This document shows, one piece after another, positions 562-57,653 of a DNA stretch of 64,000 nt; the stretch's first letter is position 1; each line of letters begins with the position of its first letter. This stretch comes from Utricularia gibba. Its lineage: Eukaryota > Plantae > Magnoliophyta. The stretch is taken from positions 2,480,001 through 2,544,000 of the forward strand of contig NEEC01000002.1 in assembly GCA_002189035.1 (NCBI GenBank), in the 5' to 3' direction. The notes below the pieces were generated by a model. It was not told the origin of the DNA. It made no database searches and saw only the letters and a list, made by a program, of their open reading frames with translations. Both the position numbers and the translations under genes were made by a program.

Positions 562-936
562 ATGAAAAGGCTGCGGGAGGTGTTCAAAACCATCACGGGG
601 AGGCTGATGCTGATCCCTCTGGCCATACTTCTGGCGACGTATCAAGTGAAAGGAATCGATCCCCTTCAAATTCCCATGATGAAACTATTCCTAGCTAACT
701 TCATCGCGTACTGGACAATCGACGCCGTGAACGGCGCCTGCTCAGCGTCGGACGAGTTGATGTTTCTTCCGGCTTCGTTCACAGCCATCGTCGCAACCCT
801 CGCCTTCTTTTTTCTCTTCCTGCACCCACGTTGCTCGTTCTACGTGCCGCTCACGCTCTCCACCCCGCTCTCCGGCCGGGATGTTAAACCGGAGACGACG
901 CTGCCACGCCGTCTACCGCCGCGACCTCCACCTTAG
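562..936 (+). CDS. 4-TM family, subfamily A, chimeric copy: starts at the internal Met (MKRL), lacks TM4, and reads through a fold-back junction into antisense sequence
   Basis: Residues 1-~100 are nearly identical to the 57183-57653 protein. After ~870 the DNA matches the opposite strand of that gene's 3' end, giving a new Pro-rich tail. Upstream is AT-rich, with no homology to the 57.7-kb promoter. Confidence 0.6.
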   Translation: MKRLREVFKTITGRLMLIPLAILLATYQVKGIDPLQIPMMKLFLANFIAYWTIDAVNGACSASDELMFLPASFTAIVATLAFFFLFLHPRCSFYVPLTLSTPLSGRDVKPETTLPRRLPPRPPP

Positions 937-1082
937 ACTTAACCTTATAATAAATGCCCTTAACATTTTCCGGGTTCGCAACGACAAAAAGCGGGGTGGA
1001 GAGCGTCAGCGGCCCGTAGAACGAGCAACGTGGGTGCAGGAAGAGAAAAAGGAAGGCCAGGTTGCGACGATGGCTGTGAACG
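776..1082. repeat. Fold-back inverted repeat (hairpin 1): arms 776-869 and 990-1082, ~120-nt loop
   Basis: cgttcacagccatcgtcgc...ctccaccccgct pairs with agcggggtggagag...atggctgtgaacg; about 5 differences in 94 bp. Confidence 0.92.
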
Positions 1083-1088
1083 GCTTCG

Positions 1089-1282
1089 TTTTATACAATT
1101 TACGCGCCCCACTGTAAAAAGAAAAATTATATTTTGTATTATCTCATTATATATATATTGAAATGATAATATTATTCCCAAGATTCCCTATCACCATTAT
1201 ATTCATATATTACCATAATAAATATGATAATTTACTTAATTATTAATTATTTACATATATAATTCATGTTATCTTATTTCGT
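1089..1282. repeat. Left arm of ~193-bp AT-rich inverted repeat flanking the SET gene (partner 5201-5392)
   Basis: ttttatacaattt...ccctatcaccattatattcat...cttatttcgt is the reverse complement of 5201-5392, roughly 85-90% identical by eye; no TSD found. Confidence 0.88.
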
Positions 1283-5472: not shown

Positions 5473-6183
5473 GGGACGGGAGAAAGAGCGATAAAGAGGT
5501 ACAAGAAGGTCCTCCAAGGCGTCAAGTACAAATTCTTTTCAAATTTCTCATCAACAACATAATCCCTGTCATCACTTCTTTTCTACTAACCCTTCCACAA
5601 AACACAAACCTGAGTAGTTCTCCTGTGCTCTGGATCTTCCTTACGTCCCTATTTGTATATTCAATTCTGCAAATTCTTGCAATCCCTTACTCGAGAAATC
5701 AACGCCCTTTTTTACGGTGCTGCTTCCGCGTCTGCTGCCTTTGCTCTCTTCGCGGCGGGGGCAGTGCCTCGATGTCAGAATCAGCTTCAGTTTCTCCGGC
5801 GGAGGAGATTCCAGTTATTCCAATTCGTTGCAACAATCAGAGGTATAGAGAGAGCAACAGCTGGAAAGAAAGAGAAACGCGTAGGCATGAAGAACGCGAA
5901 GAGGGCAAAGGCAGCAGACGCGGAAGCAGCACCGTAAAAAAGGATGCTGATTTCTCCAGTAAGGGTAAATGATTGCAAGAATTTGAAGAATTGAATATAC
6001 AAACAGGGACGTGATGAAGATCCAGCACAGGAGAACTACTCAGGTTCGTGCTTTGTGGAAGAAGGGTCAGTAGAAAAGAAGTGGTGACCGGGATTACGTT
6101 GTTGATGAGAAATTTGAAAAGAATTTGTACTTCACGCCTTGGAGGAGCTTCTTGTACCTCTCTATCGCTCTTTCTCCGGTCCC
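5473..6183. repeat. Fold-back inverted repeat (hairpin 2): arms 5473-5754 and 5895-6183, ~140-nt loop, derived from a 4-TM family gene
   Basis: About 90% arm identity by eye with 3 small indels; perfect stretches of 35 nt (aagtacaaattc...aacaac) and 39 nt (cctttttt...gcctttgc). Confidence 0.93.
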
Positions 6184-6220
6184 TGATAGATAGCTGCTCC
6201 TTGTCGCCCTTCCTTCCCAT
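5757..6220 (-). pseudogene. 4-TM family copy (B-related, different N-terminus MGRKGDKEQ...), frameshifted and 3'-truncated
   Basis: QILFKFLINNVIPVTTSFLLTL..NLSSSPVL, then a 2-bp deletion near 6030; downstream YGAASASAAFALFAFFMPTRFS is in another frame. Confidence 0.8.
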
Positions 6221-6481
6221 CCCATGTTGGATGGGGTAAATGATTGCAAGAATTTGCAGAATTGAGTACACAGCATTCTGTATAAAAGGCGCCGCGAAGG
6301 CTACTGATGGTGTGATCGGAGCTGCGTTTCTTTTTATCATGTATAAATTAACAGCCTTCCTTATACACTGAGTGAACGCGTCTTTGATGTATAATATTTT
6401 GTATCATTTTGTAATGTTTAATTAAAAGTAATGAATGGAATTTTTGTGTACTATTTTTTTGGCAAAGAAAAGATAATTTTC

Positions 6482-6941: not shown

Positions 6942-6968
6942 TATGTGACTAGAATGTGCTAAATTAAT

Positions 6969-10800: not shown

Positions 10801-11868
10801 GTGGGAAATACAAACCTCTTAAAGCTGATAGATAATTTCATACCATCTGCTTCCTTTGTTTTTAGTTGTAAATGCTTGAAATTCACTTCATGTCGACCCT
10901 GCTGCAGCGAAACTCAGCTTCGTGCTTTCTACTCAAGCACAGAGGAAATACAATTGCTATTCGTGAGGCAGCAGGAACAACTAAAGGCAATGCAAAGGAC
11001 ACTCGAAGAAGATGAAGAGAATTATGACTGCACATCAATAGCTGCTGAATTGAATCCAGTGGATGAGAACGAAAATATATCAACAGCCCATAAAAAGACA
11101 GAAGGCGTTGCAGATAAGTTGCAGTTAGGCGGCGGTGGAGCAAGCAGCAGAGAAGATTCAGAGTCCTCAAGTGATGAAACCATTGCAACTGAGGCGCATA
11201 GCCATGATGCCACGGCTGTAGATCACGAAGAAGAAGACACTCAGGAGGTAGTATTCACGACCATAGATGTGAATATGAAGTGTGCTTTTGACGTTAACGC
11301 CGTTGGAACAGAGCTGATACCCGAGACGGAGGGTGTAGGCACAGCCAGGATCCATGAAACTGAGCATGTCTCGGAGACGCAGAGCCAGGGACGTGGCATC
11401 GACACCACACAGTTGGAATGCAAGATGGATGTAGACAAACACCCCGCCACAGATGAGTGCCGTGTGAGTCATGGAGAAGCTAACCCTGAGGCGTCTGGAG
11501 CTCAGGATCTGAGAGAATGTGCTCATGGAACAGCAGACCTCTTGGCATCAGAAGTAGCCGGCAGCTGGGCCTGCAGCACTGCACCTTCAGCCCTTGGGGA
11601 AAACGAGTCTGGGAGAAGCAAAGATCACGACGCGGGTGATCCCACTGCTTCCGAGAGTCGGAATGTTGCACCCTCCCATGTTAGAGCTTGTGCGCGAAGA
11701 AATCATGAGCGCCGGGCATTGAGCGAGATGATCGGCATCGTTGCTCCTGATGTAAGGGAACAGTTTCGTCTGGCCGTCGAAAGCGGCTATGAACAAGTTG
11801 GCTCGGGCGGGGATGGATCCTTGTCTGCTTCCGATACAGAAGACTGCGATGATTCCAATGAAGGATGA
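7816..11868 (+). CDS. FHA (SMAD/FHA) domain coiled-coil protein (At2g45460-like), multi-exon, apparently intact
   Basis: VWGVLTAITDKARKRKQ|GVNMLLTSDEHCIGRL..VSARHCKI..KDT|STNGTYWNWEKL..HGDIISIAF, GPVSLDDFRSLQRSN, AAREEAWAKVSALELE, ETQLRAFYSSTEEI, ADLLASEVAGSWACSTAPS; splice phases consistent where checked. Confidence 0.9.
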
Positions 11869-12017
11869 TGGATGATCACGATATGAATCCCTTCTCTGGT
11901 TTCCCCACGACCACAATCACCACCCGTTTTAAACATTTCCCTTTTTTAACAACCTTTTTTTCCCAAAATTATCTTTTCGTTTCCAACATTATTCCTCAAA
12001 AATAATACACAAAATTC

Positions 12018-12556
12018 CTCATTTCACCAGGCACCACCACATCCTCATCAACTTCTCCGTCCCAGCTCAAACCTTCCCCGGGACAGTCCCCGCCACCATA
12101 TTCTCCGATTCCACGACCTCCAAGATGGAGAAGCAGATTGAGATTTTCAAATTTCTCACCAAATCCATATTCCCCGTCTCGACTTCTCTTCTCCCCACCC
12201 TTGTACACGACAAGACGAACCTGAACAGTGCTCCTGTGCTGTAGATCTTCCTCACGTCTCTCTTTGTGTATTCAAATCTACACATTCTTGCCATCATTTA
12301 CCCCCACTGGAAAAAAGAGCGCTTTTTTTACGGTGCTGCTTCAGCCTCTGCTGCCTTTGCTACCTTCGCTCTCTTCGCGTTCTTCATGCCTACGCGTTTC
12401 TCTTTCATCCCAGCTGTTGCTCTCTCTATTGCTGTGATCGTTGCAGCGAATTGGGATAACTGGAATCTCCTCAGCCGCGACTCCGCTGAAGAAACTGAAG
12501 CTAATTCCGACATCCAGGCACCGCCACCGCCGCGCAGGCTAATAATGATGGTGTGA
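12018..12556 (+). pseudogene. 4-TM family B copy lacking exon 1, with premature TAG
   Basis: Begins inside the intron (tcatttcaccag). In-frame ATG at 12125, TGG>TAG at 12242-12244; the remainder matches 41563-41994. Confidence 0.85.
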
Positions 12557-12876
12557 TCGGAGCTGTGGTTTTCTTTTTATCATAAATAAATTAACGACTG
12601 TTAACAGTTACACCCTGATGTATAATACGTACCATTTTGTAATGTTTAATTAAAAATATGAATGGAGTTGTTGTGTATTATTTTTGAGGAATAATGTTGG
12701 AAAAGAAAATATAATTTTGGAAAAAGGTGTTAAAAAAGAGCAATGTTTAAAAGGGGAGATTCTGGTGGTTGGAAAACCAGATCTCTTCTTCCTTTTCTGT
12801 TATTTCTCTCGAATTGTGCGCCGGGATCCGCCACCGCTGCCGGAAAAGTCATTTTTTCGTCAATTTTCTGTCAGAA

Positions 12877-14335
12877 ATGAGTAACGGAGAGCTTCTTCAA
12901 ATCGAACCGCTCGAGCTTCAATTTCCTTGTGATTTCTTTCTCTTGTTTTTTTATCCTTTGCCGTGGGCTTCTTTTTTTTTTTTTTTTTTTTGAAGTTTTG
13001 ATTGTCGATTTGGAAGGATTCTTGTTTCGTGTTCAGTTTCGATATCTGTCGATTTTACTCGGTTGTCTGCCTTCTGGGCTTTGAATTTTCTTCCACGCGT
13101 CTAATTTTTTTTTATCCAATTCTTTTTCCTTGGTGCGTTGAAAGTCGAATTGAAGAAGCAGATCTCGTGTTCCCTGCAATTGATCAACAAATCGGATAAT
13201 TATGTTGCATTCAAGGTATCATGCTGCTGCTTCCTTCCTCAATGTTATGATTTTCAGCGTATTATCCCTACGGTCAGACGTGAGATAATGTAAAGGAGGA
13301 ATTTTGCGATGACATTGTGTAGTATCTCCGTTTCATGATGATTGATGAACACGTTCCAGGTGAAAACAACTAACCCAAAAAGTATTGCGTGACACCGAAT
13401 ACGGGAGTCGTCATTCCTCACTCTACATGTGATGTTGCAGGTAATGGATTTTTATTTCATCCTTCCGCTTTTGCCTAAGAGGAACGCAGGACTCGGGGTG
13501 TATTCCACTCCGCAGTGCTAGTCATTTATGGTTTGCTGATTCATATTTCTATGCCCTTCAGTTACAATGCAAGCACAAAAGGAGGCTCCTCCAGACATGC
13601 AGTGCAAGGATAAATTTCTCCTCCAGAGTGTCGTAGCTAGCCCTGGATCAACAGTAAAGGATATTACTGCAGAAATGGCGTGTGGCTTGTCAGTGACCCT
13701 GATAAGTTGATTAGAGATGCGGTTGATGTCCAAAAAAAAAATGTTTTTTTGACAAGTGTTTACGTCTTTTATCAGTTCAACAAAGAGTCTGGAAACCATG
13801 TTGATGAGAACAAGTTGAGAGTTGTGAATGTTCCACCTCCAAGGCCACCTTCTCCAGTTTATGAGGGAGTGGAGGAAGGCTCAGACAATGAGGCAGCCTA
13901 TCAGTATTCTGATTCTAATGCTGTGAGTCCTGGGATCTTTTCCTATCAGTATTGTACAATTTTTAAATGTCATCAGTTTTGCAATGCATCACAATCTTCC
14001 CATCTCTTTTATAATTGCAGATGTTTAAAGCATTGGGTGAACAGAAGGGGACTACAACTGAGGTTACATCTGATACTATGATAGTGTTATTTCGAAGTTG
14101 CCTTAAAATTGAAAAATCCTTTTCTACTGGGGTTATAAGGAAGATGTTTTTATGTTCTCATTATCTTAGCGAAAGCAGGAAAATAAATCTTGAGTTAATT
14201 CTACACAAGATGTTAGTAGGGATTCTCTTGTCCTGGTGGACTTCATTATCAAATATAATCGATGTTTTATGAAGAGTGGTATTGCTTTCTTGAGATGCTT
14301 TGTGCTGCTAATATTTCAAGGGCTACGTTACTTGA
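12877..14335 (+). pseudogene. 3'-truncated VAP27 copy lacking coiled-coil and TM exons
   Basis: MSNGELLQIEPLELQFP..., apparent -1 in C run 13374-13376, GT>GC donor at 13678, 21-bp in-frame deletion (SPRDSVS); breaks in the intron at acttga 14330-14335. Confidence 0.85.
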
Positions 14336-14468
14336 CATCTCCCAAGTTTGTGTGGAGCGTCACCGCCTTGGGTGACCCAAATTGTTCGTGCAGCCAAAAA
14401 CAGGATACATAATCAAGACTGAAAAATCGAAACATGCACCGACCTGTTCGACTGAACTCCCCACTCGC
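14330..14468 (-). pseudogene. Cyclophilin intron-1/exon-2 fragment (mirror of 47685-47820)
   Basis: [12 protein letters not shown]; matches 53051-53187. Confidence 0.85.
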
Positions 14469-14779
14469 CGGAAAATAAAACTGGCATCCGTACCCACCGG
14501 ACCTCGTCGAATTAACCTTGAAATAACAAGCTCCTGATTTGAAACGTTGAAAAGTAGTCAAACCCTAAATTAAAATATCCAATGCACATTATTTATTTTT
14601 AAATAAATAACAAAAATTGCAACACCCAAAGTAATGGGCATTGAGCGAGATGAACGAATATCGTTGCTCCTGATGTAAGGGAACAGTTTCGTCTGGGCGT
14701 CGAAAGCGGCGATGAACAAGTTGCCTTTTCGTTCACAACATCATTCCTCAAAAATAATACACAAAAACTCCATTCATAA

Positions 14780-15130
14780 TTATCGGATTTGTTGATCAGT
14801 TGCAGGAAACACCAAGGAAAAAGAAGTTGATTAAAAAATTAGAAGGTAAACAACCAAATAAAGTTGGAAGAATTCTTCCAAATCGACAATCAAAACTTAG
14901 GAAAAAAAAACCCACGGCAAGGGATACAAAAATAAGAGGAGAAGGAAATTTCTAGGAAAGTGAAGCTGGAGCGGTTCGATCTGGAGGAGCCCTCCGTTAC
15001 TCATTTTGTGACTGTGAGAGATTCGTGGACAGAGAATTGACGAAAACAACGACTTTTCCGGCTGCGGTAGCGGATACCGTCTCGCAATTCGAGAGAAATA
15101 ACGGAGAGGGAAGAAAAGAAAAGATCTGGT
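14780..15130 (-). pseudogene. Diverged VAP27 promoter/exon-1/partial exon-2 fragment (mirror of 47020-47375)
   Basis: MSNGGLLQIEPLQLHFP at 15004. Confidence 0.8.
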
Positions 15131-15323
15131 TTCCCCTACGGCCACAATCGCCCGTTTTAAATATTGCCTTTTTTAAACAACCTTTTTTTTCCAAAATTAT
15201 TCCTCAAAAAATAGTACACAAAAATTCCATTCATAATTTTTAATTAAACATTACAAAATGATACAAAATATTATACATCAAACACGCGTTCACACAGTGT
15301 ACAATGCTCTTAACAGTGTTGTT

Positions 15324-15997
15324 TTATATACGATAAAAAGAAAAGCAGCTTCGATCACACACCATCAGTAGCCTGCGCGGCGGTGGTGGTGCCACGATGT
15401 CGGGATTAGTTTCAGTTTCTCCGGCGGAGTCACGGCGGAGGAGATTCCAGTTATCCCAATTCGCTACAACAATCAGAGCAATAGAGAGAGAAACTGCTGG
15501 AATGAAAGAGAAACGCGTAGGCATGAAAAACGCGAGGAACGCAAAGAGAGCAAAGGCAGCGGAGGCGGAAGCAGCAGCGTAAAAAAGGCGCCCGTTTCTC
15601 CTCTGAGGGTAAATGATGGCGAGAATGTGTAGAGTTGAATACACAAAGAGAGACGTCAGGAAGATCTGTTGCACACCGTTCAGGTTCGTCTTGTCGCGTA
15701 CAAGTGTTAGGAGAAATATCGCGACGGGGATGATGGTTTTGGTGAGAAATTTAAAAATCTCCATCAGCTTCTCCGTCTTGGAGCTCGTAGTATCGGAGAA
15801 GATGGTGGCGTGGACTATCGCGGGGGAAGGTTCGGCCTGCACGGAGAAGTTGATGAAGATGTGGTGCCTGGTGAAATGGGGGATGTCATTTTCGTTTCAC
15901 ACAGAAACTGAGCTAACTGTAAGTGATCAGAAACATACCTTGCCGCGAACGAGGGTTCCGCCGAGCCATAACCGCGTGCGTTCTGGAAAGCGGCCAT
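15324..15997 (-). CDS. 4-TM family B, two-exon gene, 200 aa, intact (mirror of 46153-46826)
   Basis: ATG 15997, TATA-like tataaat upstream, GT-AG intron; translation identical to the 46-kb copy. Confidence 0.7.
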
Positions 15998-42227: not shown

Positions 42228-44183
42228 TCCGGTTTATGTAAGAGGGGAGGAGGATATTTATATAAGAGGGGGGGATTCAGGAATCACGATCAGGAGGCTG
42301 ATCATTTCTTGGCTATTTCGGTAATTGTACACAGAGGGCCCACTTTTTCCACACAGGCAGCCAAACCGTGGTTCGGTTTTGAAATTATATTTCTAACCAT
42401 GGTTCGGTTTTGTGTTATAAACCGTGGTTCCAGGCACTCAATTTTGAAATTATATTTCTAACCATGGTTCGGTTTTGTGTTATAAATTTTTTGAAGGAAC
42501 TATATTTAATTTCTTAAGATTCTAAAATTAGAAATTTAAATCTTATAATTAATTTTAGAAATTATTAAATTTATTGAATTTTTATTTTAAAGATTAAATA
42601 AGAGATTAATTCTAAAAATTATATTATTCAATTTTTATCTATTCTAAAAATACATTTATATTATAATATTAAATTATACAATAATTTAATATATTAAATT
42701 TTATAATATATCTTTTATTTTATTAAAATCAATATAATTTTATGTTATCTTATAAAATAATTTTACAATCTTAAATCAATTCTATTCATATAATTTTAAA
42801 ACTGACTATATTCTACATAATTTGAATTAAAAATTTAAAAAACAGAGGAGGCCCAATCAATTTTATGGGAGAGATATAATTGTAGATTGGGCGTGGCTAA
42901 ACCCAAAAATAGCATTATATTTAATGGATATTTTATAATATAATATAATAGTATAATTTTTCTTATGGTATTCACAAACAATATACAATCACGAATATGC
43001 AATTCTTTTTTAAATATGATAGGAAATTGGCCCAAATTTGTTTACAATATCGTGATATCATTCATTAAAATAAGGAGAATGTCATGAAACTTTATAATAT
43101 GCATTACGAATTTTAATGTTTGTTGTCCACTCTGCACCAACCCTCAACCTTTATTAAAATCGCGTCCAATTTTTTCGACTCTCACTTTGCGTTGACTTAT
43201 ACGTTAAAGGGAACTCCATTTTGGGTGATATCCAGGATGCTTCCTTAATCAACGTGTGTATATTCACAAGAAAACCTTTTACTATTAAAGAAATCTGCAA
43301 CAATTTGCTTGACTAATGAATATGCGTAATCTGGTAGACGTTACACTTTGTGTGTTGATCTCCTTACATCCAATTCCTCTTCAGTAACATACTTCAACTC
43401 TGTAATTTTTTTTATTTGGTAATTTAATCAATTGTTTATTGTACATGTTTACCTGAAATGGAACATTAACAAGTTTGCTTTTTATCCTAGTGAATGTGGT
43501 GTAACATTCTTTACGATTCATGCATTATCATTACTTATGTTTGATGCATTTATAAACTATTTATACAACATATCATCGATTCTTGTGCATCTAATTCACA
43601 AAAGTGATAACTATTATTTTTAACAAATTCATTGTCCATTTTTTGGAATTTCAAGTGGTTTTTGAAGGGTGTTACAGTTTCTAAGAGATTGCAACAATTT
43701 GTTCTTATTTTTAAATGGATTGTAAGGTTTGATCGGGTGTTATGAGATGTTCCACTTTTGAAGTATATTACTGAATGTTATATTACTGAGTTTTATCAGT
43801 GCCATGTCCTTATTGTTATTGGGTGTGATTGTTCCATTGAATGTGAACGAGTGCAATTAAGTGAAAACGAGAATCAATTTCAAACATGAAAATTGTGTAA
43901 ATAATCCCAAGTAAAATGATAGGTTTGTGTTATTTGTAAAATTGTGTAAATAATCCTATTTGATAAATGCCCGCGCTGACAGATGCAGATGCAGGTAAGG
44001 GGAGAAGAGATATAGGAACACGAGGATAATTGAATAGAAGAGTTCAATCTGTCCCAATATCAGAATTCGAATACTGTTTAGAACACCATAAAACCTTACA
44101 ATTCCATACCGAGAAATTGGACAAAAAGATAGATCCGTAGATGATTGGGCCGCCTTGCCCACTATGTTACCCCTTCCCGCCGA

Positions 44184-44244
44184 ATGGCCGCCTTCCAGAA
44201 CGCACGGGGCTACGGCATGGCGGAACCCTGGTTCGGCTCCCAAG
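44184..44244 (+). pseudogene. Orphan exon 1 of 4-TM family B
   Basis: MAAFQNARGYGMAEPWFGSQ followed by ag|gtgcta; no exon 2 follows. Confidence 0.7.
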
Positions 44245-45792
44245 GTGCTACTGTGGGGCCAGATGACCAGGAGTGACGTCGGACTGCGTAGCCTCACGCG
44301 GCTCTATATTTTGAAAACCAAAATAGATGACGTGGATAAAAAATTGGTTAAATAGATGTACTCCTCTATTTTGCTTTGGTAAATAGATAATGTTATTAAA
44401 ATATTAAATTATGTTTATTTAATTATTTATTTTTCATGAATTTAGATGTCAATAAACAATCTTATGTATTATTTTACATTAATAACTTGGAGGGGTTGCG
44501 TGGGGTCCACTAAAAGAAAGGATCCACTTAAGTGGCGTTGATTAGTTCGAGAAGTTATGGGCCCCGATGATCAACAGTGACTTGCCCTCGCCATTTTGTT
44601 TCCACGTTGGACTCCAACGGTTGGAGGAGTTGGTTGGGGTCCACTAAAAGAAAGGGCCCCGCATTGGAACGCTGATTTTATCCTATCCTATCCTATCCTT
44701 GAATAAACTTCTTTCAAGTTTGCATTCAATTTAAGAAATAAATTTTAATGATGTATTAGAGTGATTTCTATTTATATAAAAAACACTCCATGTTCTTCAA
44801 TTTGAAAATAAATAATTTTATTCATATGTTATGATTGAGTGATATTTTGATAATACATAGTTTGTAATAGCTAATAATAAAAGTTCCTGAACTAAATCTT
44901 AACAAATACATCCTAGACTTAATATATATTTTTTATTAATATTCACTTTTTTTAGTTTTGGTGAAATGTCATGATTCCAATCCACCGTCACAACATTAAT
45001 GGATGTTAGGTGCAGAAATTTTTCTTGGGGCGATAGGGGTCCCACGTCTCGTACACCGTCGGGGACGACCGCACGGAAACCAATAAGGTATAAACTAAAT
45101 AAGAATGATAAATGAAATAAATTGTTGTTATGTAACTTTAAAAAAAGATTACATAATGAAAATATGTTGTATTACAAAATGAGAAATCAATATTAAAATA
45201 AGAATTTACATAAAAAAAATAAATTTTAATTCACCAAATTATAAAAATAAAAAAATGAAATAATGATATTATTAGAAAAACGATCATGTTAGAATGAGTA
45301 TCATTTTTCATTTATTTTTTTATAAAAATTTTCATTTTAAAAAATGAAAACATGTCTGTTTTGCAAAACTGGTAATTTCTCATTTTGAGAATGAAAATGG
45401 TTGCAAAACATAGCCACAGGTACAAACACGGTGAGTATCTTTATTTTATTATTATTTTTATTAAAACTACAAATATGGTCCTAAGTTATTATAAAAATTA
45501 AATAATTCCAAAAAATACAATTATTAATCATATGATTGGTTTTATGTGTATTGACGTAATTCTTGTACATTCCAAAAATGTAAACTTTCTATTTGAATTT
45601 ATTATTTTAACATTTTGACCGTATTTTTACCATTAACTTATTCTTCACTTTATGTATAAAGTAGTCCTAAAATTTATTCTTTTATGTTGAATAAATTAAT
45701 GACGAAAGCAATGATGATTTCAATTTTTTTTAAAAAAAAAGACAAAAAATTTTAATTGGTAAATTTGAGTATAAATAATTATTTAACTCATA

Positions 45793-45912
45793 TGAATGCC
45801 GCTCTCTTTAAATAAGTGAAGATTATAGTTTAAGTGGTGTATTAACTTTTCTCCAAAAAAAAAAAGAGTGTTTACTACGATTAAGATGATGCTTTTTCTC
45901 ACAGGTTCTAAG
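45793..45912 (+). repeat. Copy of the cyclophilin 3' UTR/flank (mirror ~16240-16358)
   Basis: gaatgccgctctc..aagtgaagattatagttt..ctacgatt..gatgctttttctca matches ~54222-54352. Confidence 0.8.
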
Positions 45913-46152
45913 ATGAGGATGCATTATTTATTGAAAAAAGATGAGGATGTCAAATCAAAAGGTGTTTAATAAGACAAAAGATTTCTCCAAAAAGACTTTT
46001 CATTATTTGTTGAAATAAAATGTGGATGTGAAATCGAAAGGTATTAGGCGTCACAGGTTGATCGTATGCGTCACTGGTTGAATAAATCGGCTAATTTCCT
46101 CAATGGTCCTTATAAATCCCCCCGCCCTCCAGGAAGCAATCCTCATCCGACA

Positions 46153-46826
46153 ATGGCCGCTTTCCAGAACGCACGCGGTTATGGCTCGGCGGAACCCTCG
46201 TTCGCGGCAAGGTATGTTTCTGATCACTTACAGTTAGCTCAGTTTCTGTGTGAAACGAAAATGACATCCCCCATTTCACCAGGCACCACATCTTCATCAA
46301 CTTCTCCGTGCAGGCCGAACCTTCCCCCGCGATAGTCCACGCCACCATCTTCTCCGATACTACGAGCTCCAAGACGGAGAAGCTGATGGAGATTTTTAAA
46401 TTTCTCACCAAAACCATCATCCCCGTCGCGATATTTCTCCTAACACTTGTACGCGACAAGACGAACCTGAACGGTGTGCAACAGATCTTCCTGACGTCTC
46501 TCTTTGTGTATTCAACTCTACACATTCTCGCCATCATTTACCCTCAGAGGAGAAACGGGCGCCTTTTTTACGCTGCTGCTTCCGCCTCCGCTGCCTTTGC
46601 TCTCTTTGCGTTCCTCGCGTTTTTCATGCCTACGCGTTTCTCTTTCATTCCAGCAGTTTCTCTCTCTATTGCTCTGATTGTTGTAGCGAATTGGGATAAC
46701 TGGAATCTCCTCCGCCGTGACTCCGCCGGAGAAACTGAAACTAATCCCGACATCGTGGCACCACCACCGCCGCGCAGGCTACTGATGGTGTGTGATCGAA
46801 GCTGCTTTTCTTTTTATCGTATATAA
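46153..46826 (+). CDS. 4-TM family B, two-exon gene (46153-46211, 46283-46826), 200 aa, intact
   Basis: TATAAAT 46111-46117; ATG in acaATGg context; 71-nt GT-AG intron; splicing joins MAAFQNARGYGSAEPSFAA-R-HHIFINFS in frame to the 172-aa ORF; four hydrophobic segments. Confidence 0.72.
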
Positions 46827-47019
46827 AACAACACTGTTAAGAGCATTGTACACTGTGTGAACGCGTGTTTGATGTATAATATTTTGTATCATTTTGTAAT
46901 GTTTAATTAAAAATTATGAATGGAATTTTTGTGTACTATTTTTTGAGGAATAATTTTGGAAAAAAAAGGTTGTTTAAAAAAGGCAATATTTAAAACGGGC
47001 GATTGTGGCCGTAGGGGAA

Positions 47020-47375
47020 ACCAGATCTTTTCTTTTCTTCCCTCTCCGTTATTTCTCTCGAATTGCGAGACGGTATCCGCTACCGCAGCCGGAAAAGTCG
47101 TTGTTTTCGTCAATTCTCTGTCCACGAATCTCTCACAGTCACAAAATGAGTAACGGAGGGCTCCTCCAGATCGAACCGCTCCAGCTTCACTTTCCTAGAA
47201 ATTTCCTTCTCCTCTTATTTTTGTATCCCTTGCCGTGGGTTTTTTTTTCCTAAGTTTTGATTGTCGATTTGGAAGAATTCTTCCAACTTTATTTGGTTGT
47301 TTACCTTCTAATTTTTTAATCAACTTCTTTTTCCTTGGTGTTTCCTGCAACTGATCAACAAATCCGATAATTATG
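47020..47375 (+). pseudogene. Diverged VAP27 5' fragment
   Basis: ATG 47146 MSNGGLLQIEPLQLHFP; partial exon 2 ends at aattatg 47369-47375. Confidence 0.8.
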
Positions 47376-47426
47376 AATGGAGTTTTTGTGTATTATTTTT
47401 GAGGAATGATGTTGTGAACGAAAAGG

Positions 47427-47490
47427 CAACTTGTTCATCGCCGCTTTCGACGCCCAGACGAAACTGTTCCCTTACATCAGGAGCAACGAT
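47427..47490 (-). pseudogene. 64-bp antisense fragment of the FHA last exon
   Basis: Reverse complement of ~11738-11800. Confidence 0.8.
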
Positions 47491-47684
47491 ATTCGTTCAT
47501 CTCGCTCAATGCCCATTACTTTGGGTGTTGCAATTTTTGTTATTTATTTAAAAATAAATAATGTGCATTGGATATTTTAATTTAGGGTTTGACTACTTTT
47601 CAACGTTTCAAATCAGGAGCTTGTTATTTCAAGGTTAATTCGACGAGGTCCGGTGGGTACGGATGCCAGTTTTATTTTCCGGCG

Positions 47685-47820
47685 AGTGGGGAGTTCAGTC
47701 GAACAGGTCGGTGCATGTTTCGATTTTTCAGTCTTGATTATGTATCCTGTTTTTGGCTGCACGAACAATTTGGGTCACCCAAGGCGGTGACGCTCCACAC
47801 AAACTTGGGAGATGTCAAGT
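47685..47820 (+). pseudogene. Cyclophilin intron-1/exon-2 fragment
   Basis: Matches 53051-53187. Confidence 0.85.
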
Positions 47821-49278
47821 AACGTAGCCCTTGAAATATTAGCAGCACAAAGCATCTCAAGAAAGCAATACCACTCTTCATAAAACATCGATTATATTTG
47901 ATAATGAAGTCCACCAGGACAAGAGAATCCCTACTAACATCTTGTGTAGAATTAACTCAAGATTTATTTTCCTGCTTTCGCTAAGATAATGAGAACATAA
48001 AAACATCTTCCTTATAACCCCAGTAGAAAAGGATTTTTCAATTTTAAGGCAACTTCGAAATAACACTATCATAGTATCAGATGTAACCTCAGTTGTAGTC
48101 CCCTTCTGTTCACCCAATGCTTTAAACATCTGCAATTATAAAAGAGATGGGAAGATTGTGATGCATTGCAAAACTGATGACATTTAAAAATTGTACAATA
48201 CTGATAGGAAAAGATCCCAGGACTCACAGCATTAGAATCAGAATACTGATAGGCTGCCCCATTGTCTGAGCCTTCCTCCACTCCCTCATAAACTGGAGAA
48301 GGTGGCCTTGGAGGTGGAGGAACATACACAACTCTCAACTTGTTCTCATCAACATGATTTCCAGACTCTTTGTTGAACTGATAAAAGACATAAACATTTG
48401 TCAAAGAACATTTTTTTTTGGACATCAACCCGCATCTCTAATCAACTTATCAGGGTCACTGACAAGCCACACGCCATTTCTGCAGTAATATCCTTTACTG
48501 TTGATCCAGGGCTAGCTACGACACTCTGGAGGAGGAATTTATCCTTGCACTGCATGTCTGGAGGAGCCTCCTTTTGTGCTTGCATTGTAACTGAAGGGCA
48601 TAAATTATGAATCAGAAAACCATAAATTACTAGCACTGCGGAGTGGAATACACCCCGAGTCCTGCGTTCCTCTTAGGCAAAAGCGGAAGGATGAAATAAA
48701 AATCCATTACCTGCAACATCACATGTAGAGTGAGGAATGACGACTCCCGTATTCGGTGTCACGCAATACTTTTTGGGGTTAGTTGTTTTCACCTGGAACG
48801 TGTTCATCAAATCATCATGAAACGGAGATACTACACAATGTCATTGCAAAATTCCTCCTTTACATTTCTCACGTCTGACCGTAGGGATAATACGCTGAAA
48901 ATCATAACTTTGAGGAAGGAAGCAGCAGCATAATACCTTGAATGCAACATAATTATCCGATTTGTTGATCAATTGCAGGGAACACGAGATCTGCTTCTTC
49001 AATTCGACTTTCAACGCACCAAGGAAAAAGAATTGGATAAAAAAAAAATTAGACGCGTGGAAGAAAATTCAAAGCCCAGAAGGCAGACAACCGAGTAAAA
49101 TCGACAGATATCGAAACTGAACACGAAACAAGAATCCTTCCAAATCGACAATCAAAACTTCAAAAAAAAAAAAAAAAAAAAAAGAAGCCCACGGCAAAGG
49201 ATAAAAAAACAAGAGAAAGAAATCACAAGGAAATTGAAGCTCGAGCGGTTCGATTTGAAGAAGCTCTCCGTTACTCAT
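47815..49278 (-). pseudogene. 3'-truncated VAP27 copy (MSP exons in frame; no coiled-coil or TM exons)
   Basis: ATG 49278; exons 1-4 open; GT>GC donor at 48474-48473; 21-bp deletion; breaks at tcaagt 47815-47820. Confidence 0.82.
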
Positions 49279-49590
49279 TTCTGACAGAAAATTGACGAAA
49301 AAATGACTTTTCCGGCAGCGGTGGCGGATCCCGGCGCACAATTCGAGAGAAATAACAGAACAGGAAGAGGAGATCTGGTTTTCCAACCACCAGAATCTCC
49401 CCTTTTAAACATTGCCCTTCTTTAACAATCTTTTTCCAAAATTATATTTTCTTTTCCACCATTATTCCTCAAAAATAATACACAAAAACTCCATTCATAA
49501 TTTGTAGTTAATCGTTACAATAGGTACAATTGATCATATAACACTGAACGTATAAACAGACCTTGATGATAAAAAGACAAGCACCTCCGA

Positions 49591-50259
49591 TCACACCGTC
49601 TGTAGACTTGGCGGCGGAGGTGGCGCCTCGATGTCGGAATCAGCTTCAGTTTCTCCGGTGGAGTCGCGGCGGAGGAGATTCCAGTTATCCCAATTCGCTG
49701 CAACAATCACAGCAATAGAGAGAGCAGCAGCTGGAATGAAAGAGAAACGCGTAGGCATGAAGAACGCGAGGAACGCGAAGAGAGCAATGGCAGCAGAGGC
49801 GGAAGCAGCACCGTAAAAAAGGCACCCGTTTCTCCTGTGAGGGTAAATGATGGCGAGAATGTGTAGAGTTGAATACACGAAGAGAGACGTGAGGAAGATC
49901 CACAGCACAGGAACACTACTCAGGTTCGTCTTGTCGTGTAGAAGGCTTAGGAGTAAAGACGTCGTGACGGGGATTATGTTTTTGATGAGAAATTTGAAAA
50001 TCTCCACCAGCTTCTCCGTCTTGGAGCTCGTAGAATCGGAGAAGATGGTGGCGTAGACTGTCGCGGGACGGTCTGGCCTGGCACGGAGAAGTTGATGAGG
50101 ATGTGGTGCCTGGTGAAATGAGGGATTTCATTTTCGTTTCGTTTCACAAAGAAACTGAACTAACTGTAAGTGAACAGAGAGATTTGTTTCGTTTGTATAC
50201 CTTGCCGCGAAAGAGGGTTCCGCCGTGCCGTGGCCGCGTGCGTTCCGGAAAGCGTCCAT
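49591..50259 (-). CDS. 4-TM family B, two-exon; intact if the G run at 50065-50067 is one base short in the assembly
   Basis: ATG 50259 MDAFRNARGHGTAEPSFAAR, conserved intron, ctataaatac TATA upstream; one extra G restores the frame into EIFKFLIKN... Confidence 0.55.
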
Positions 50260-50789: not shown

Positions 50790-52242
50790 ATAAAGCATGT
50801 GCATACAAGAAAATGCATACCAAAAAAGATGCAAAGGAACTCTGGAGTAAAATTGAAGAAAACTTCAGACCCTTTACAATACAGAACAAAATGTTGCAGG
50901 ATCAAAAAATTTCAAGACTCAAATATAAGGATGGAGAACCTATGGAAGACCACATAAGCAAGTTCGAAGACCTGGTAGACGAAATGACATCCATACGTAT
51001 GGATCTGGACAATGAAACTCAAGCCATCAAGTTGCTTCAAACACTGACATCTAGCTAGGAGGTGTTGACAGGTATTCTCATGCATACATCAAGTGGATTG
51101 TCCTATGGCTCTATAGTGAATGCCCTATTGCATGAAGAATTGAGAAAGAAATATGTCTGTCAAGACTCAAAGGGGTCACTGGCCGTCACAAAATAGGGAG
51201 AAAAGTGGAAACACAAGAAGGTCCAAAACAAGAAGAAGGATTTGAAGGATAAAGGAAAAAGTGTGATAGAGTCAAATAGAAACAAAGGTTGTGAAGAAAC
51301 GAGAACATGCTATTAATGCAAAAAGACTGATCACATAAGAAAACAATGCAAATTCTAATTGAGGACACAACCCCAAAGGCAAACTACCAATGATTCTCAA
51401 GGACTCAAGAAAGTAGAGAATTCAAGAACAACGCTTCCTCATGTAGAAGAAGAGTTACTGATATTACTTCCTCAATCAACAGATAGCGATATAATGGTAT
51501 TCCAGACAACAGGGGAAGTAAACAAGGTGACATGTTTTGAATGGATTGCGGACTCCGCACCCAACTATCATGCCACACCCTGCAAAGAAATCATGATCAA
51601 TCTTAATTTGAGGGATTATGGAAATGTGAAGATGGGAAATTTTGATGTCTTAAATATTTTGGGGATTGGAGATATTCATGTTATCACAAACCGAGGTCAC
51701 AAACTCACACTGGCGGATGTGAGATATGTCCCTAATATCTGCTTGAATTTAATCTACGTGAATCACTTGGACCACTCAGGATATGTAAGTTCCTTTGGGA
51801 GTCAAAGATGAAAACTCATACAAGGATCAAGGGTGTGTAACATGGGAGAAGTGGATGGCAATCTCTATAAAACCCAGGTGACCCCTGTGAAATCTGAATC
51901 ACACATGGTCACTCAAACAAACGATTCTCACAAACTATGGCACAAAAGGTTAGGACACCTGTCAAACAAAGGCTTACATTTTCTGATGAAACAGAATCTA
52001 ATTGATAAATGCCCTCTGAATAGACAACTTGCGAGGAATGTAGAATTGGAAAGCATCACAGAACTGAATTCAACAGATTATTTCATAAAAGTGATGAACT
52101 TCTAAACACCATGTTATCTGATGTTGGAAGGCCAGTTTAATGCAAATCTATTGGAGGAATGAAATTTTTTATCAACTTTATTGACGACGCATCCACAAAG
52201 TCATGGGTTATTATGATACACAAAAAGAGTCAAACAGATGAT
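50790..52242 (+). mobile_element. Degenerate Ty1/copia internal fragment (gag, protease, pre-integrase, integrase start); no LTRs seen
   Basis: AKELWSKIE..MEDHISKFEDLV (gag), CY*CKKTDHIRKQC (zinc knuckle), WIADSAPNYHATP (protease), LWHKRLGHLS (GAG-pre-integrase), FFINFIDDASTKSWV; stops and frameshifts. Confidence 0.9.
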
Positions 52243-53022
52243 GTTCCACAACGCCCCTCGGAGTCTGAACCAGATTCCCCTGATTCGTTGACACCCAACG
52301 TAGACATCATTCTTTCCAGAAGAAAACGCCATTGGAATGAAGCATGCTATGGAGATCATTTCTTCCTCTTGCCAATGGATTCACTTTTAACTTCCAAACC
52401 AGTTTCTGCGATTGCCTAAATACGTGTAATTTTGCGGAGGATCTGTATAACATATTTGCTAATGAAGAAGATCTCATGGATGGATATGGACAACTTCAGT
52501 GGTTCGAGATGCCGCTTTTGGTTGCTTGTTTTGATGAAGGTTGGAGTGAGAAATGGGAATTTAAAAGACTAAAATGCCCCCATACCAAATATACCAGTAT
52601 ATAAAGAGGCGAGGAGAAAACCTAGAATGAAATTTGTCTCGATTCCGGAGGGCAAAAAGGTTAGATCTGATTCTGTCTCTCGCCTGCTCTTTACGCTGCG
52701 TGTGGATCACGATCGATCGATTCTGCGTTTTTTATTTCTTCCATATATCACATGAATCGTGTAATTCAGAGCATCTGATTTTGCGGGTTCATAAACGTTA
52801 GGTTTGTGGTTTTTTCGTCTGCGAATCAGCGCCGTGTGTGTGTAGGCATTTCTTTCTGATTTATGCTTTTGTGAGAACACTTGCCACCAAGTGCCCTAAT
52901 TTTTATTCAAAAATCTGCTATAATTCTATTGTCCAATACTGACTAGATCACTGGGGAGGGTAAAATCTCACGGAGATCAACGAGCCGTTGGTATTACCGC
53001 AACACAGATAACATTACGATAA

Positions 53023-54176
53023 ATGGTGAGTCTGATCTTCTTTTTCTTTTAGTGGGGAGTTTGGTCGAACGGGTTCGATGCATGTTTCAGTTTTTCAGCC
53101 TTGATTATGTATAATGTTTTTGAATACACGAATAATTTGGGTTACCCAAGGCAGTGACGCTCCACACAAACTTGGGAGATGTCAAGTGCGAAGTTTTCTG
53201 CGACGAGGTTCCTAAGACTGCAGAAGTATGTTTTACTTTTGTTAACGATACATGCTTGTTTTTAACAGTTCTTTAAATTGAAACCTTAAATTTGTCATTG
53301 AATGTGTCCTTTCACATTTTTCGGTGAGTGGGCTGTTTTTGAAGTATTGCCAAAAAACAAATGTGATTTTTTTGCTTATTACAAAACTAGTGTTACATTT
53401 GTGGGAAAATTATACAAAATACGTAAATTTTTTTTTTTGTGGAATCAATATTGATCATTACTTCCACAAACTACGATAAATTTGCACCTTTTTGTTATAT
53501 TGAATTGGTAGATCCTTGGTTTGCCTTGTATTTTTAAATGAGAAGATTTATTTTTTGAAGTTGAGTTGATCTTGCACCATATGGCAGAACTTTCTAGCAC
53601 TATGTGCGAGTGGCTATTATGACGGAACGATATTCCATCGAAACATTAAGGGCTTCATGATACAAGGTGGTGATCCAACTAACACTGGCAAGGGAGGAAC
53701 AAGTATATGGGGTAAAAAGTTCAGTGACGAAATAAGAGAATCTCTCAAGGCTAGTTTTTCTGTATTTTGTAAATTTGGGTTTCATGAAAACTCATACTAT
53801 GCTAGTGATATGTTTCTTTTTGAACAATCACTGATGTTCTTCTACTTCATTGCGTGATACAGCACAATGCTCGAGGTATACTATCCATGGCTAACAGTGG
53901 CCCCAACACCAATGGAAGTCAGTTTTTCATCACATACGGCAAGCAACCTCATCTCAATGGACTCTACACCATCTTCGGTAAAGTGATTCATGGATTTGAA
54001 GTTCTTGACATCATGGAAAAGGTATTCCAAGCAAATTCTTCCTTTTTATTTGTGTTGTCTTTCCTATAAATATTTTGACTCAACTCTTCCAGGCTCAAAC
54101 CGGCCCTGGCGATCAACCACTTATGGAGATCAGAATCAACCGTGTCACAATACATGCTAATCCACTCGCTGGGTAG
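53023..54176 (+). CDS. CYP18-1: Cyclophilin PPIL3/CYP18-1-like peptidyl-prolyl isomerase, 160 aa, 5 exons
   Basis: Exons 53023-53025, 53151-53225, 53588-53749, 53863-54021, 54093-54176 give [55 protein letters not shown]; intron 3 is GC-AG. Confidence 0.95.
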
Positions 54177-57100
54177 GTTGAGTAGATTTTATCCTTGACT
54201 GTGCTCTAGCTTAGAAGGGCTGGAATGCCGCTCTCTCTTTAAACAAGTGAAGATTATAGTTTTAAGTGGTGTATTAACTTTTCTCCCCCCCCCCCCAAAA
54301 AAAAAAGAAGTGTTTTACTACGATTATGATGATGCTTTTTCTCAGAGCTTCTAACTTGTGCCTTCGTTTGAGATGTTGTAGTTTTGAACATTGAGGACAA
54401 GTGTAGTTTATGCGTATTTTTTGTAGTGATAGAATGCATTATGGAACTGTGAACCTGCTTTAATACTTGTCTTCGATATCTTTGGTGATTTGACCAATTT
54501 TTCATGATCATCATCTGAATAATTCATTTTTGTAACACCTTATTTTATCATTCCTGATCATGTAAAATCTCAATCTTGTTACTAAAAATAAACTTGTGAT
54601 CCGGAGGACCAGCTACTCGATTATGATAATTGGGCATCATGGAGTTTTGGTTGTCTACCAGATGCATGAACTGTTGTTAATGGGCTTTAGGATCCACATC
54701 AGTAAATAGTGAAAAGACAAGAAAATCCTCCATGCTCAGCTTCCTCGATATGCTGGTGGGTCGGAATTAAATCGAAAAGCATGACCAGATGCGGTGCCTA
54801 ACCCATACTTGATAAAAAATAAGGATATTGATAAAAAATAAGGATATCCAGGAGCTTAAAGTTCAACTTCATCTTATGTTGATTTAGGACCTGGGATTCA
54901 TGAAATGTAAGTCAATGCATTCTATGAGAATTACGGAGGGATGTATAATAACGAAAATTATCAAATGTTACAAAGAGACCATTCTGATTTTTGCAGGAGA
55001 CAATCAGTGCTCCTAGTCATCTAATGTCATCGAGCATCAACAAGCGTCACTCTCTTCTACATGTCATCAAGCGTTGTCGGGAGTTGAAGGAGATTGGAGA
55101 AATTTTTGAAGATAAATGTTCGAAAAATGACTCTAGAAAGAGGTATAAGAGAATATTTGTATGTACTCGACTCAAAAAATGACATATCTCGCTCATTATG
55201 TTTTATAGATTATTAATAAAAAATGTAATCATCAAGAAAATAAATCACTAAGATAGATTATTAATAATAAAATTAACCAAAGTAAATCACAAACATATTA
55301 AATAAGGAGGGTAAAATTGCAACAAAAGAAATATGCCCTTGAGATAAGTGATGCAATGCATGATCTTGATGATGTGGGCTAAAAGTTTCTAAAGAAATAA
55401 GAATGTTGTGGTACACATTGTGGGAAATAAAATGTAATCCTGATGAATAGATGGAGATGAACATCTTAGAATCGAATTTTCTAATTCTACATTAGAATCT
55501 GAGGGATTTCACGATTTATCTAGAAAAATTATCATTCGTACATTCTTTATCATATATTAAGTTAAAGAATTTATATTATAAATAATTATTTTTCTCATCA
55601 ATAAAAGGATGACCAAATTTCTAATACATCTTACATTGCCATGTTTCTACATTGAGCAAATGAAAAGTTATAATGATTACAACTTAGTGATAATAATGGA
55701 CACATTGATCTCTCATTTTTTTTCTTCACAAAAGCTTGTTTTTTCTTTTTCTCTACTTCTAAGATAGCTATCTTTCATGTTTTGTTTACAAAATGCTTCC
55801 TAAAGAAACAGGTAGATAGAAAAATTGAGAAATTGTGGTTCAATTGAGAATAACTGCATCTTTAATTCCCAAACAATATGCTTATATACACATACTTAAT
55901 AATTAATTCATTTAAAAAATATCTATTCTATACTTTCCATTATTCTTTTTCTTTCAACTCCACACTTGTCGCATTGTGCTGCCTGTGAGTTGCTTCCTGC
56001 CCAACAGATCGGCACACCTTCAAACGAGACAATATGACACTTTTGCACCTTCCCAACTTCGACGTGCCCCTCCAACTATTGCGGCGGCCTTTCTGTTGCA
56101 GACCCAACCTGTAAGAGAAAGAGAAGAGAAGTTTGTCTGTTGTTCGTTCGCCGTATGTTTCTGTTCGGAGTGCGGCGCCGCCTTTGGGGTCGACAACGGA
56201 GATGTGCAGCTGAATCAAATGCTAACGTTAGCAATCTAGCAGGGCAGGGGCCGACGCCCCCGAATACTATTTTTTAAAAATAAATATTCATTTTTGGGGG
56301 GTATGTCTAATCCTAGAGCAAATGGACTCGGTTGATGATATACCCTTTTGATAAAAAGTATTTTGTAAAATACTTAATTTTTTATTCAATTTGTAAAATA
56401 CCTTTGTTACTTTGTCAAAAGTATGATATTCAATTATTACATGCTATTTGAATCGAGTAATTATATTCTCATGGGCGAATGGTCCATGCTTCTACACGAT
56501 GAATTTCTTGATGGCCACTGCAGTAAAACCATAAAACAAAGCACTTGGTTTTACATGCAAACCAAATGATTGAATTACAATATTTCAATCAATAGTTATC
56601 AATCATTGGAGTTATATATTCTATTTTAATCGAATAATTATTATTTTTCAATTCTAAATTTTTATTACATTTTCATTCGATTCAAATAATACGTGATGTT
56701 TAAATGTTTTTCGTATGACAATATGACATGTGATATTTCATAAACCGAATTAAAAATATGATATTTTACAAAGTAATTTTTTGGACAAAGTATATTACCA
56801 ATTTACTCACACCAAATGCGTTCTCTATTGGTTGAAGTCACGGTCGTGTGTTTGAAATTAAATTAAATTAATTTCATAATTTTAATATGCGAACATAAAA
56901 ATTATTTATTTTGACCATCATTATGTGAAAAAACGATCATAAATGCCACGCACGCTTTACAAGTCCAGTACAAGACCACGCAGGGAGCTTTTAAGGCAAA
57001 GCACCTGCCTGAACCCTGAAGGTTTCAATACCGAGACGATCCCGACAACGTTTTTATTAGGGCAGAAGAGTGTCCGGGAGGCGTCGTGGCTTGGCTTCAC

Positions 57101-57182
57101 CGCAGAGCATGCAGCAGACCCGCATGCATGCAGGCACTCGAAGTCCTCCCTCACCTTCTACGAATTACGTCAGCCGGGGATG

Positions 57183-57653
57183 CTACACCGGAGATGACGC
57201 TGCCTCGCCGTCCACCGCCGCGACCTCCTCCCTACACCTAACCTTATAATAAATGCCCTTAACATTTTCCCAGTTCGCAAAGACGAAAAGCGGCGGGGAG
57301 AGCGTGAGCGGCACGTAGAACGAGCAACGTGGGTGCAGGAAGAGAGAAAAGAAGGCGAGGGTTGCGACGATGGCTGTGAACGAAGCCGGAAGAACCATCA
57401 GCTCGTCCCACGCCGAGCAGGCGCCGTTCAGGGCGTCGATTGTCCAGTACGCGAAGAAGTTGGCTAGGAATAGTCTCATCATCGGAACTTGAACGGGGTC
57501 GACGCCTTTCACTTGATACGTCACCAGAAGGATGCCCAGTGGGATCGGAATCAGCCTCCCGGTGATGGTTTTGAACACTGCCCGCAGCCTCTTCATCGTC
57601 ATCGTCCTCGTGGAAGGGTTCGGTTTCCCAGTCTCCGGCGTCGGCGCGCCCAT
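57183..57653 (-). CDS. 4-TM family subfamily A, intronless, 156 aa, intact
   Basis: TATA (tatatataa) ~57733-57742, gccATGg start; EVFK-like, ASFTAIVATLAFF, HPRCSFYVP and ANWEN motifs align with family B (EIFK, ASASAAFALFAF, MPTRFSFIP, ANWDN). Confidence 0.68.
   Translation of the reverse strand: MGAPTPETGKPNPSTRTMTMKRLRAVFKTITGRLIPIPLGILLVTYQVKGVDPVQVPMMRLFLANFFAYWTIDALNGACSAWDELMVLPASFTAIVATLAFFSLFLHPRCSFYVPLTLSPPLFVFANWENVKGIYYKVRCREEVAAVDGEAASSPV

Follow-up and report, generated by a model that had tools for sequence, protein, structure and literature searches.

The question raised by the stretch of the Utricularia gibba genome considered here (64,000 nucleotides (nt) of contig NEEC01000002.1, positions 2,480,001 to 2,544,000 of the forward strand; in the following called the window) is whether a set of short, related open reading frames (ORFs) scattered between positions 562 and 57653 represents a family of genes in use or the remains of one. 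An original prediction, made from the letters alone, had proposed an unrecognised family of proteins with four transmembrane segments, present in about eleven copies or fragments belonging to at least two subfamilies (A and B), one of them with a first exon hidden by splicing. The stretch is a gene-dense flowering-plant segment. Our answer is that the ORFs probably belong to a real, lineage-restricted protein-coding family under birth-and-death evolution, whose products, judged from hydropathy, are predicted to be small four-helix membrane proteins, and whose genes lie in a palindromic, gene-converting region.

Inventory of the family

Related ORFs beginning at 562, 12266, 15324, 41563, 46308, 49591 and 57183 were already present in the ORF list. 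The whole window was searched by tblastn with B and A proteins, by blastn with the 5′ regions and with a hidden Markov model (HMM) of the family, which was built from six ORFs and run with filters off against all stop-to-stop pieces in the six frames. By these means family sequence was recovered at each of the eleven places that had been named, and beyond them none was found in the six-frame window, the next best HMM match having an E value of 0.18. The sequences form two subfamilies, A (562 and 57183) and B (12012, 15324, 41563, 46153 and 49591, and the fragments at 5473–6400 and 44182); the designations used below are those of Table 1. Within subfamily A, 562–869 is 91% identical (blastn) to 57596–57289, in inverted orientation. 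The count of eleven holds for places, not for sequences: as parts of an inverted repeat with 100% identity, B15 and B46 are one sequence counted twice.

Constraint on the protein

Subfamilies A and B share 30% identity over 125 amino acids (aa), with a composition-corrected BLASTP E value of 6e-12, and the motifs that had been proposed to correspond one by one (E[VI]FK, AS..A...LAFF, P-R-SF-P and ANW[DE]N) indeed line up. The four hydrophobic segments were likewise borne out, in that hydropathy gives them in both subfamilies; in the models they are predicted as helices. In an alignment of six sequences the invariant residues (Y68, A91, S92, A95, A98, A101, F106, R110, S112, F113, L119 and S120 in the numbering of the 172-aa B46 ORF) concentrate on the third helix and on the loop after it (A91 to F113).

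Of all the evidence, the comparison of codons between A57 and B46 speaks most strongly for a real encoded protein. The proportion of synonymous differences (pS) is 0.80, which is saturated, and that of non-synonymous differences (pN) is 0.42 (Fisher p = 1.5e-9); it should be noted, however, that the A-B codon alignment was built on the protein, by which dN is biased somewhat downwards. Saturation of pS together with a pN of 0.42 indicates that purifying selection has acted on the protein over a span of time in which neutral DNA would long have ceased to be alignable.

Within the subfamilies the signal is less clear. The pairwise ratio of non-synonymous to synonymous substitution (dN/dS) over the core is 0.47–0.73 within B and 0.66 for A57 versus A562; the core indels, of 3 and 6 nt, keep the frame. 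This pattern seems to fit one constrained lineage mixed with decaying copies, and it looks more like relaxed constraint or decay than like positive selection, of which the pairwise dN/dS of the B copies and of A57 versus A562 gives no sign. With respect to nucleotide identity, B12, B41 and B49 form a younger group (88–92%), to which B46/B15 is the outlier (80–88%). The intact gene is therefore the oldest B lineage, and each of the younger duplicates carries a different lesion.

Repeatedly duplicated paralogues, with intact genes, pseudogenes and fragments together, are the mark of birth-and-death evolution. This part of the original prediction therefore stands: intact copies, three differently damaged copies and fragments are all found. 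Rapid adaptive evolution is without support from dN/dS. Nothing beyond the copy-number turnover itself favours the suggested role in defence, reproduction or genetic conflict.

Searches for relatives

That the family is an unrecognised one was borne out in every library tried. In Pfam (six copies scanned, E values up to 1) no family reaches its gathering threshold; the best score is 17.8 bits for UbiA (cut-off 34.2), and the matches are at chance level and none recurs between copies. Among 5.8 billion clustered proteins word-seeded searches found nothing with B, with A or, at E values up to 10, with the A+B alignment, and exact look-up of the seven candidate ORFs found none on record. A profile search of the PDB sequences at E values up to 10 found none, and of 144 pattern matches in the JGI metagenome contigs 0 were confirmed. 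An exhaustive HMMER profile search of 1.84 billion representatives gave 0 matches, at a database size at which a remote relative under about 40 bits would go unlisted; a close family is thus absent, whereas distant kin could remain.

A language-model search of the ESM Atlas, which compares features rather than aligned sequences and in which all scores stayed under the lead threshold of 0.9, gave two neighbours from Streptophyta. An unnamed 155-aa cluster (57 members) comes first both for B46 (0.89; 195 of 256 features) and for the B41 core (0.81), and for A57 it comes third (0.81). A 200-aa cluster (65 members), which does not appear in the list for A57, is in third place for B46 (0.87; 191 features) and in second place for the B41 core (0.76). 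DUF6490 (PF20100) has no Pfam match with the copies and is a feature neighbour only (rank 40–41, scores 0.71–0.73).

AlphaFold2, given the 6-row alignment, returned models with a predicted local distance difference test score (pLDDT) of 54 with B as first sequence and of 52.6 with A as first sequence, which is too poor for use, and fold and topology are hence read from hydropathy alone. When the B model (pLDDT 54) was used in a shape search of the Atlas, only unspecific helical bundles were retrieved, with template modelling (TM) scores of at most 0.5. Of the check by HMM and structure that had been proposed, the profile searches thus came back blank and the structural part gave matches without specificity.

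Gene model of subfamily B

Subfamily B had been predicted to have a TATA box, an exon with the ATG and a short GT-AG intron, kept in three diverged copies, and this is what was found. B46/B15, B41 and B49 have exon 1, a TATA box 32–42 nt upstream of the ATG and a GT..AG intron of 71, 86 and 91 nt, respectively. In B46 the TATA box is at 46111, and the ATG at 46153 has an A at −3 and a G at +4. The intron (46212–46282; 71 nt; GTATGT...CACCAG) is followed by exon 2 (46283–46826), and splicing leaves 200 open codons. B46 gains its last 11 residues because 2 nt are inserted directly ahead of the stop codon at which the other copies end. The claim of a spliced 200-aa protein thus holds for B46 and for its identical mirror B15, which together are one distinct sequence.

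The other copies depart from this model in different ways. In B41 the TATA box, the ATG and both splice sites are retained, with the predicted exon junction at 42169/42082; apart from a TAA at codon 10, the remaining 182 codons are open. In B49 all signals are present, with the predicted junction at 50201/50109, and a short C-run lying 13 codons into exon 2 carries a −1 shift, which marks either a pseudogene or an indel of the assembly. B12 is homologous only from about 15 nt ahead of the acceptor onwards, which places a duplication breakpoint inside the intron, and a TGG is changed to TAG in the core.

With moderate confidence we place the start of translation in B at the ATG of exon 1, from where the reading frame would run through the short GT-AG intron to give a protein of about 190–200 aa. 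The alternative is that exon 1 and the intron form a 5′ leader and that the B protein starts at an internal methionine before the core, with a length of about 143–146 aa. Such a protein would be similar in size to those of subfamily A, and A and B are dissimilar in their N-termini, without any similarity before the core. B41, which has the stop codon in exon 1 and yet is found in contigs from RNA runs, has an internal ATG eight codons upstream of EIFKF, the start of the conserved core, and B46 has an ATG, at 46386, immediately before EIFKF. This alternative is possible, but it is the less probable one. The exon-1 ATG of B46 is in good context and in frame after splicing, and B49 has no internal ATG before its core. 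The N-terminal extension, which precedes the core and is 55 codons long, has an open frame in B46, in B12 and, apart from the single TAA, in B41. Moreover, relative to B41 and B12 the extension of B46 contains a +1 and a −1 indel (at 46311 and 46324) that are 13 nt apart and together restore the frame, and both indels are found together in a contig of the independent run X1.

Transcription evidence

For the B46 stretch seven runs of one organism were available, three of which contain 4–9% of its sampled words, and four runs were placed on 41300–47290. Exon 2 and the 3′ untranslated region (UTR) of B41 are represented by contigs of X1 (41430–41661 and 41686–41741) and X4 (41660–41820), and the contigs of X2 on B41 (41730–41862 and 41833–42050) do not differ from the window. 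Exon 2 of B46 is represented by a contig of X1 (46281–46644; 10 substitutions) and by an identical one of X2 (46425–46523). The 5′ end of the neighbouring MSP/VAP gene is also under contigs (47032–47290). In the four runs 3.6 kb of intergenic DNA (42100–45700) is bare, save for one 51-nt repeat piece, which argues that the libraries are truly RNA. The claim that the genes are expressed is thus supported for exon 2 of B41 and B46 and not for A57.

No assembled contig of the four runs joins the two exons across the proposed junction 46211/46283. The first base of the X1 contig is 46281, two bases ahead of exon 2. As AG is the last dinucleotide of exon 1 as well as of the intron, the sequences of spliced and unspliced forms would coincide from exactly this point on, and a branch in an assembly graph would be expected here. 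The start at 46281 is therefore suggestive of a splice junction, without proving it. The same X1 contig is 97% like B46, from which it differs by 10 bases and a compensated indel pair; its source is either an allele of another accession or a paralogue elsewhere in the genome. An apparent joint 41444/47290 turned out to be an artefact of the end of the segment 41300–47290, the contig simply running on to 47369–47407.

Several findings have to be set against a family of working genes. The dN/dS values within B are mostly not significantly below 1, only that of B46 versus B41 being nominally so (p 0.016), the codon comparison of A with B has the bias mentioned, and the full spliced frame exists in just one distinct B sequence. 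In addition, a coding extension has to accommodate the TAA in exon 1 of B41, the runs are presumed to be RNA and were seen solely as assembled contigs, exon 1 is covered by none of them, the A57 stretch occurs in none of the listed RNA runs, and the structural models are poor. From these facts it could be argued that the whole cluster is a decaying relic, in which all copies are now neutral and transcription amounts to noise or to read-through in the neighbourhood of the MSP/VAP genes. B12, B41 and B49 each have a defect, fragments and fold-backs are common, and coverage by the RNA runs is low and patchy. We nevertheless consider this unlikely. B46/B15 and A57 keep full open frames, and the TATA box and splice signals are kept; the core indels are multiples of three and the +1/−1 pair is compensated; B46 versus B41 is nominally below 1; and the intact B lineage is the oldest one.

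Duplication architecture

The B genes lie in a large inverted duplication, the arms of which (12012–17686 and 50128–44467) are 97.4% identical over 5690 nt. Within the arms, 13832–17089 and 45062–48318 are 100% identical over 3258 nt, identity elsewhere being 88–99%; the perfect repeat consists of two tracts that overlap by 10 nt and are joined at 16286–16295. The ends with B12 and B49 are only about 88% alike, and B12 is nearer to B41 (92%). A perfect tract together with diverged ends indicates that the arms are a mosaic, for which recent arm-to-arm gene conversion is the best explanation, the alternative being a duplication in the assembly. The arms flank a gene-rich spacer of 26.8 kb with about eight ordinary genes, which inverted arms could flip. 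The A copies lie further out and are also inverted to each other.

Each B gene is followed on its own strand, at a distance of about 300 nt, by the start of an MSP-domain (VAP-type) gene, and the duplicated unit is therefore B plus VAP. The MSP/VAP copy downstream of B46 is truncated behind exon 1, where the convergent units meet.

It had been claimed that every major rearrangement in the window begins or ends in or next to a family member, which is overstated. The breakpoints at 12012, 42228, 46151 and 50261 and the fragment at 44182 are in or beside B genes, but three duplications (6616–6944/10953–11284, 6970–7499/53459–54004 and 8268–9656/18600–20017) have no family member at their ends. 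One of these three repeats an exon-like part of the long ORF 10801–11868 in inverted orientation, with 97% identity, and another consists of two direct copies of a segment from an FHA-like gene.

The assembly itself has to be considered, since the perfect repeat could be one locus placed twice and some of the lesions could be errors of the consensus. The 3.26 kb of perfect identity within arms that are otherwise 88–99% alike would be explained in this way. Furthermore, AHL and HAM/GRAS family genes are usually intronless and conserved, and in the window both are broken by 1-nt homopolymer indels. In the AHL/PCC gene (21505–21520, minus strand) a C is missing, near 21515, in a C-run where a conserved stretch of 12 residues should read through. 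In the HAM-type GRAS gene (33800–33860, plus strand) the frame changes at about 33800–33850 in a G-rich run at conserved residues. The assembly thus probably contains indel errors, one of which may be the frameshift of B49, likewise in a C-run, and pseudogene calls that rest on single-base indels are weakened. However, the perfect tract is flanked by arms that are diverged yet collinear, as in a real palindrome with a recent conversion tract, and the TAA of B41 and the TAG of B12 are substitutions rather than homopolymer indels and are hence more credible lesions than the B49 frameshift. That part of the copy number is an artefact of this kind is improbable.

A derivation of the pieces from a transposon, or from some known gene of greater length, is scarcely credible and was rejected: nothing speaks for it except that the family is repeated and that there is a Copia-type fragment at 50813–52600, whereas the copies have no match in Pfam, PDB or another database, none to a transposition protein included, carry their own TATA box, ATG and stop, and are duplicated together with the host MSP/VAP gene and not as a unit bounded by terminal repeats.

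Proposed mechanism and possible function

With these alternatives weighed, the history that we propose for the protein-coding family is as follows. The chromosome segment would keep duplicating and inverting, which would have left convergent gene pairs in the 5.7-kb inverted duplication around the 26.8-kb spacer. Copy number would change by non-allelic recombination and gene conversion between the repeats, and most new copies would decay. Intact frames are retained in one B lineage (B46 = B15) and in A57, and each of the three younger B copies has its own defect. The locus is a compact, readable case of a palindromic segmental duplication that creates, homogenises and destroys gene copies and sheds hairpin loci.

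In the B protein, helices 2 and 3 are connected by a basic loop (RRNGR or WKKER), and the tail at the C-terminus reads ETE...D...APPPPRR. A basic loop and an acidic, proline-rich tail fit a location of both termini in the cytosol, and we would expect an N-in/C-in topology in which both this loop and the B tail face the cytosol. Of the features shared by A and B the best conserved is an Ala/Ser face of helix 3 (A-S-x-x-A-x-x-A-x-x-A), after which comes a short loop with R-x-S-F; helix 4 ends in an interfacial A-N-W-[DE]-N, which is likewise common to both. The common residues do not include a polar catalytic set; together with the small-residue face of helix 3 this points to helix-helix packing rather than to an enzyme. 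The protein might be an oligomeric scaffold or an accessory subunit of a membrane complex, a low-confidence guess drawn from the shared residues.

Fold-backs

Two fold-backs derive from inverted partial family copies. The one at 5473–6183 has a stem of about 285 bp, with a minimum free energy of −495 kcal/mol and a z-score of −58; the other (776–1082) comes from the 3′ end of A. Rfam finds no family over the whole window. As far as their sequences go, both appear to fit the inverted-duplication route by which hairpin loci of plants originate (PMC3237417). As in that model of the origin of plant MIRNA and hairpin loci, they consist of inverted partial copies and would be by-products rather than genes. 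Unlike MIRNA loci they have no Rfam match. It is conceivable, though quite doubtful, that the tetraspan family is in feedback with its own rearrangement products, in that small RNAs from the hairpins silence it and thus set copy number, dosage and decay; if true, this would be a self-targeting RNA loop inside a gene-converting palindrome.

Comparison with known systems

Orphan small membrane-protein families are common in plants. Taxonomically restricted gene families of plants have been reviewed (PMC10299390; PMC11876429), and the present family resembles them in having no detectable homologue or domain, a small protein, local duplication and intact next to decayed copies. It differs from young de novo orphans in that A and B have diverged to 30% identity with saturated synonymous sites. 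The family therefore did not arise de novo very recently, but is merely unseen elsewhere. Invisible to every library tried, yet with protein-level constraint and with contigs from RNA runs, it would be a genuine unannotated gene family. With a short first exon and nothing for homology-based prediction to match, it would probably be missed by standard annotation. Without a function it is of moderate interest and not surprising.

Plants have several tetraspan families of similar size, such as CASP-like/MARVEL (DUF588), DMP (DUF679), DUF1218, AWPM-19 and the HR-like lesion-inducing proteins. The likeness lies in a length of 150–200 aa, four transmembrane helices, short loops and a multigene organisation; however, none of their Pfam models matches any copy at E values up to 1. 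The PGG domain (PF13962) of plant ankyrin-transmembrane proteins is also a four-helix membrane module and is plant-specific. It is a weak structural neighbour, with a TM-score of 0.44 by query on the pLDDT-54 model, where a low-confidence helical bundle matches many unrelated bundles, and a low-ranked feature neighbour. Unlike PGG proteins, the copies have no Pfam match and no ankyrin repeats, and the TM-score is below 0.5.

Ampliconic palindromes with arm-to-arm gene conversion are known, for example, from sex chromosomes. The present arms are like them in carrying inverted multicopy genes and a tract of perfect identity inside diverged arms, and unlike them in that the arms are only 5.7 kb long, the organism is a plant and the spacer contains ordinary housekeeping genes.

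Coordinates and neighbouring genes

Table 1. Members of the family, duplicated segments and neighbouring genes in the window
Feature	Positions	Strand	Remarks
A562, rearranged subfamily-A copy	562–933	+	begins at the MKRLR methionine; homologous to A57 up to 869
Inverted 3′ piece of subfamily A (aa 98–157)	875–1082	-	fold-back partner of 776–869
Fold-back from B fragment	5473–6183		arms about 285 nt, 90–93% complementary
Further B fragments	6236–6400	+	short inverted piece; 3′ end and 3′ UTR
B12, pseudogene	12012–12583	+	without exon 1; TGG>TAG in core
B15, intact two-exon copy	15324–15997	-	exon 1 15997–15939; intron 15938–15868; exon 2 15867–15324
B41, two-exon copy	41563–42227	-	86-nt intron; TAA at codon 10, in exon 1
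Lone B exon-1 fragment, 65 nt	44182–44246	+	about 220 nt outside the right palindrome arm
B46, intact two-exon gene, 200 aa	46153–46826	+	TATA 46111; exons 46153–46211 and 46283–46826
B49, two-exon copy	49591–50259	-	91-nt intron; −1 frameshift in C-run
A57, intact single-exon subfamily-A gene, 156 aa from ATG	57183–57653	-	TATA-like box near 57735
Left arm of large inverted duplication	12012–17686		convergent pair B12 > < B15 and MSP/VAP gene pieces
Right arm of inverted duplication	44467–50128		B46 > < B49, MSP/VAP gene downstream of each
Third B plus MSP/VAP unit (B41 unit)	39720–42228		
MSP/VAP copy	13680–15145		
MSP/VAP copy	40047–41354	-	
MSP/VAP copy	47143–47407		
MSP/VAP copy	48069–49230	-	
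AT-hook/PCC (AHL) gene	20962–21788		
GRAS (HAM-like) gene	33585–35944		
Cytidylyltransferase-family (CDP-diacylglycerol synthase-like) fragment	37858–38235		
Copia-type retrotransposon fragment	50813–52600		degenerate; gag-like ORFs and Pol beta-barrel domain
KRTCAP2-like gene	near 61666		

The window thus contains several copies of the MSP/VAP gene. On the one after B46 a contig from an RNA run is unspliced from 47032 to 47407, across the expected first intron. The Copia-type fragment sits immediately beyond the right palindrome arm.

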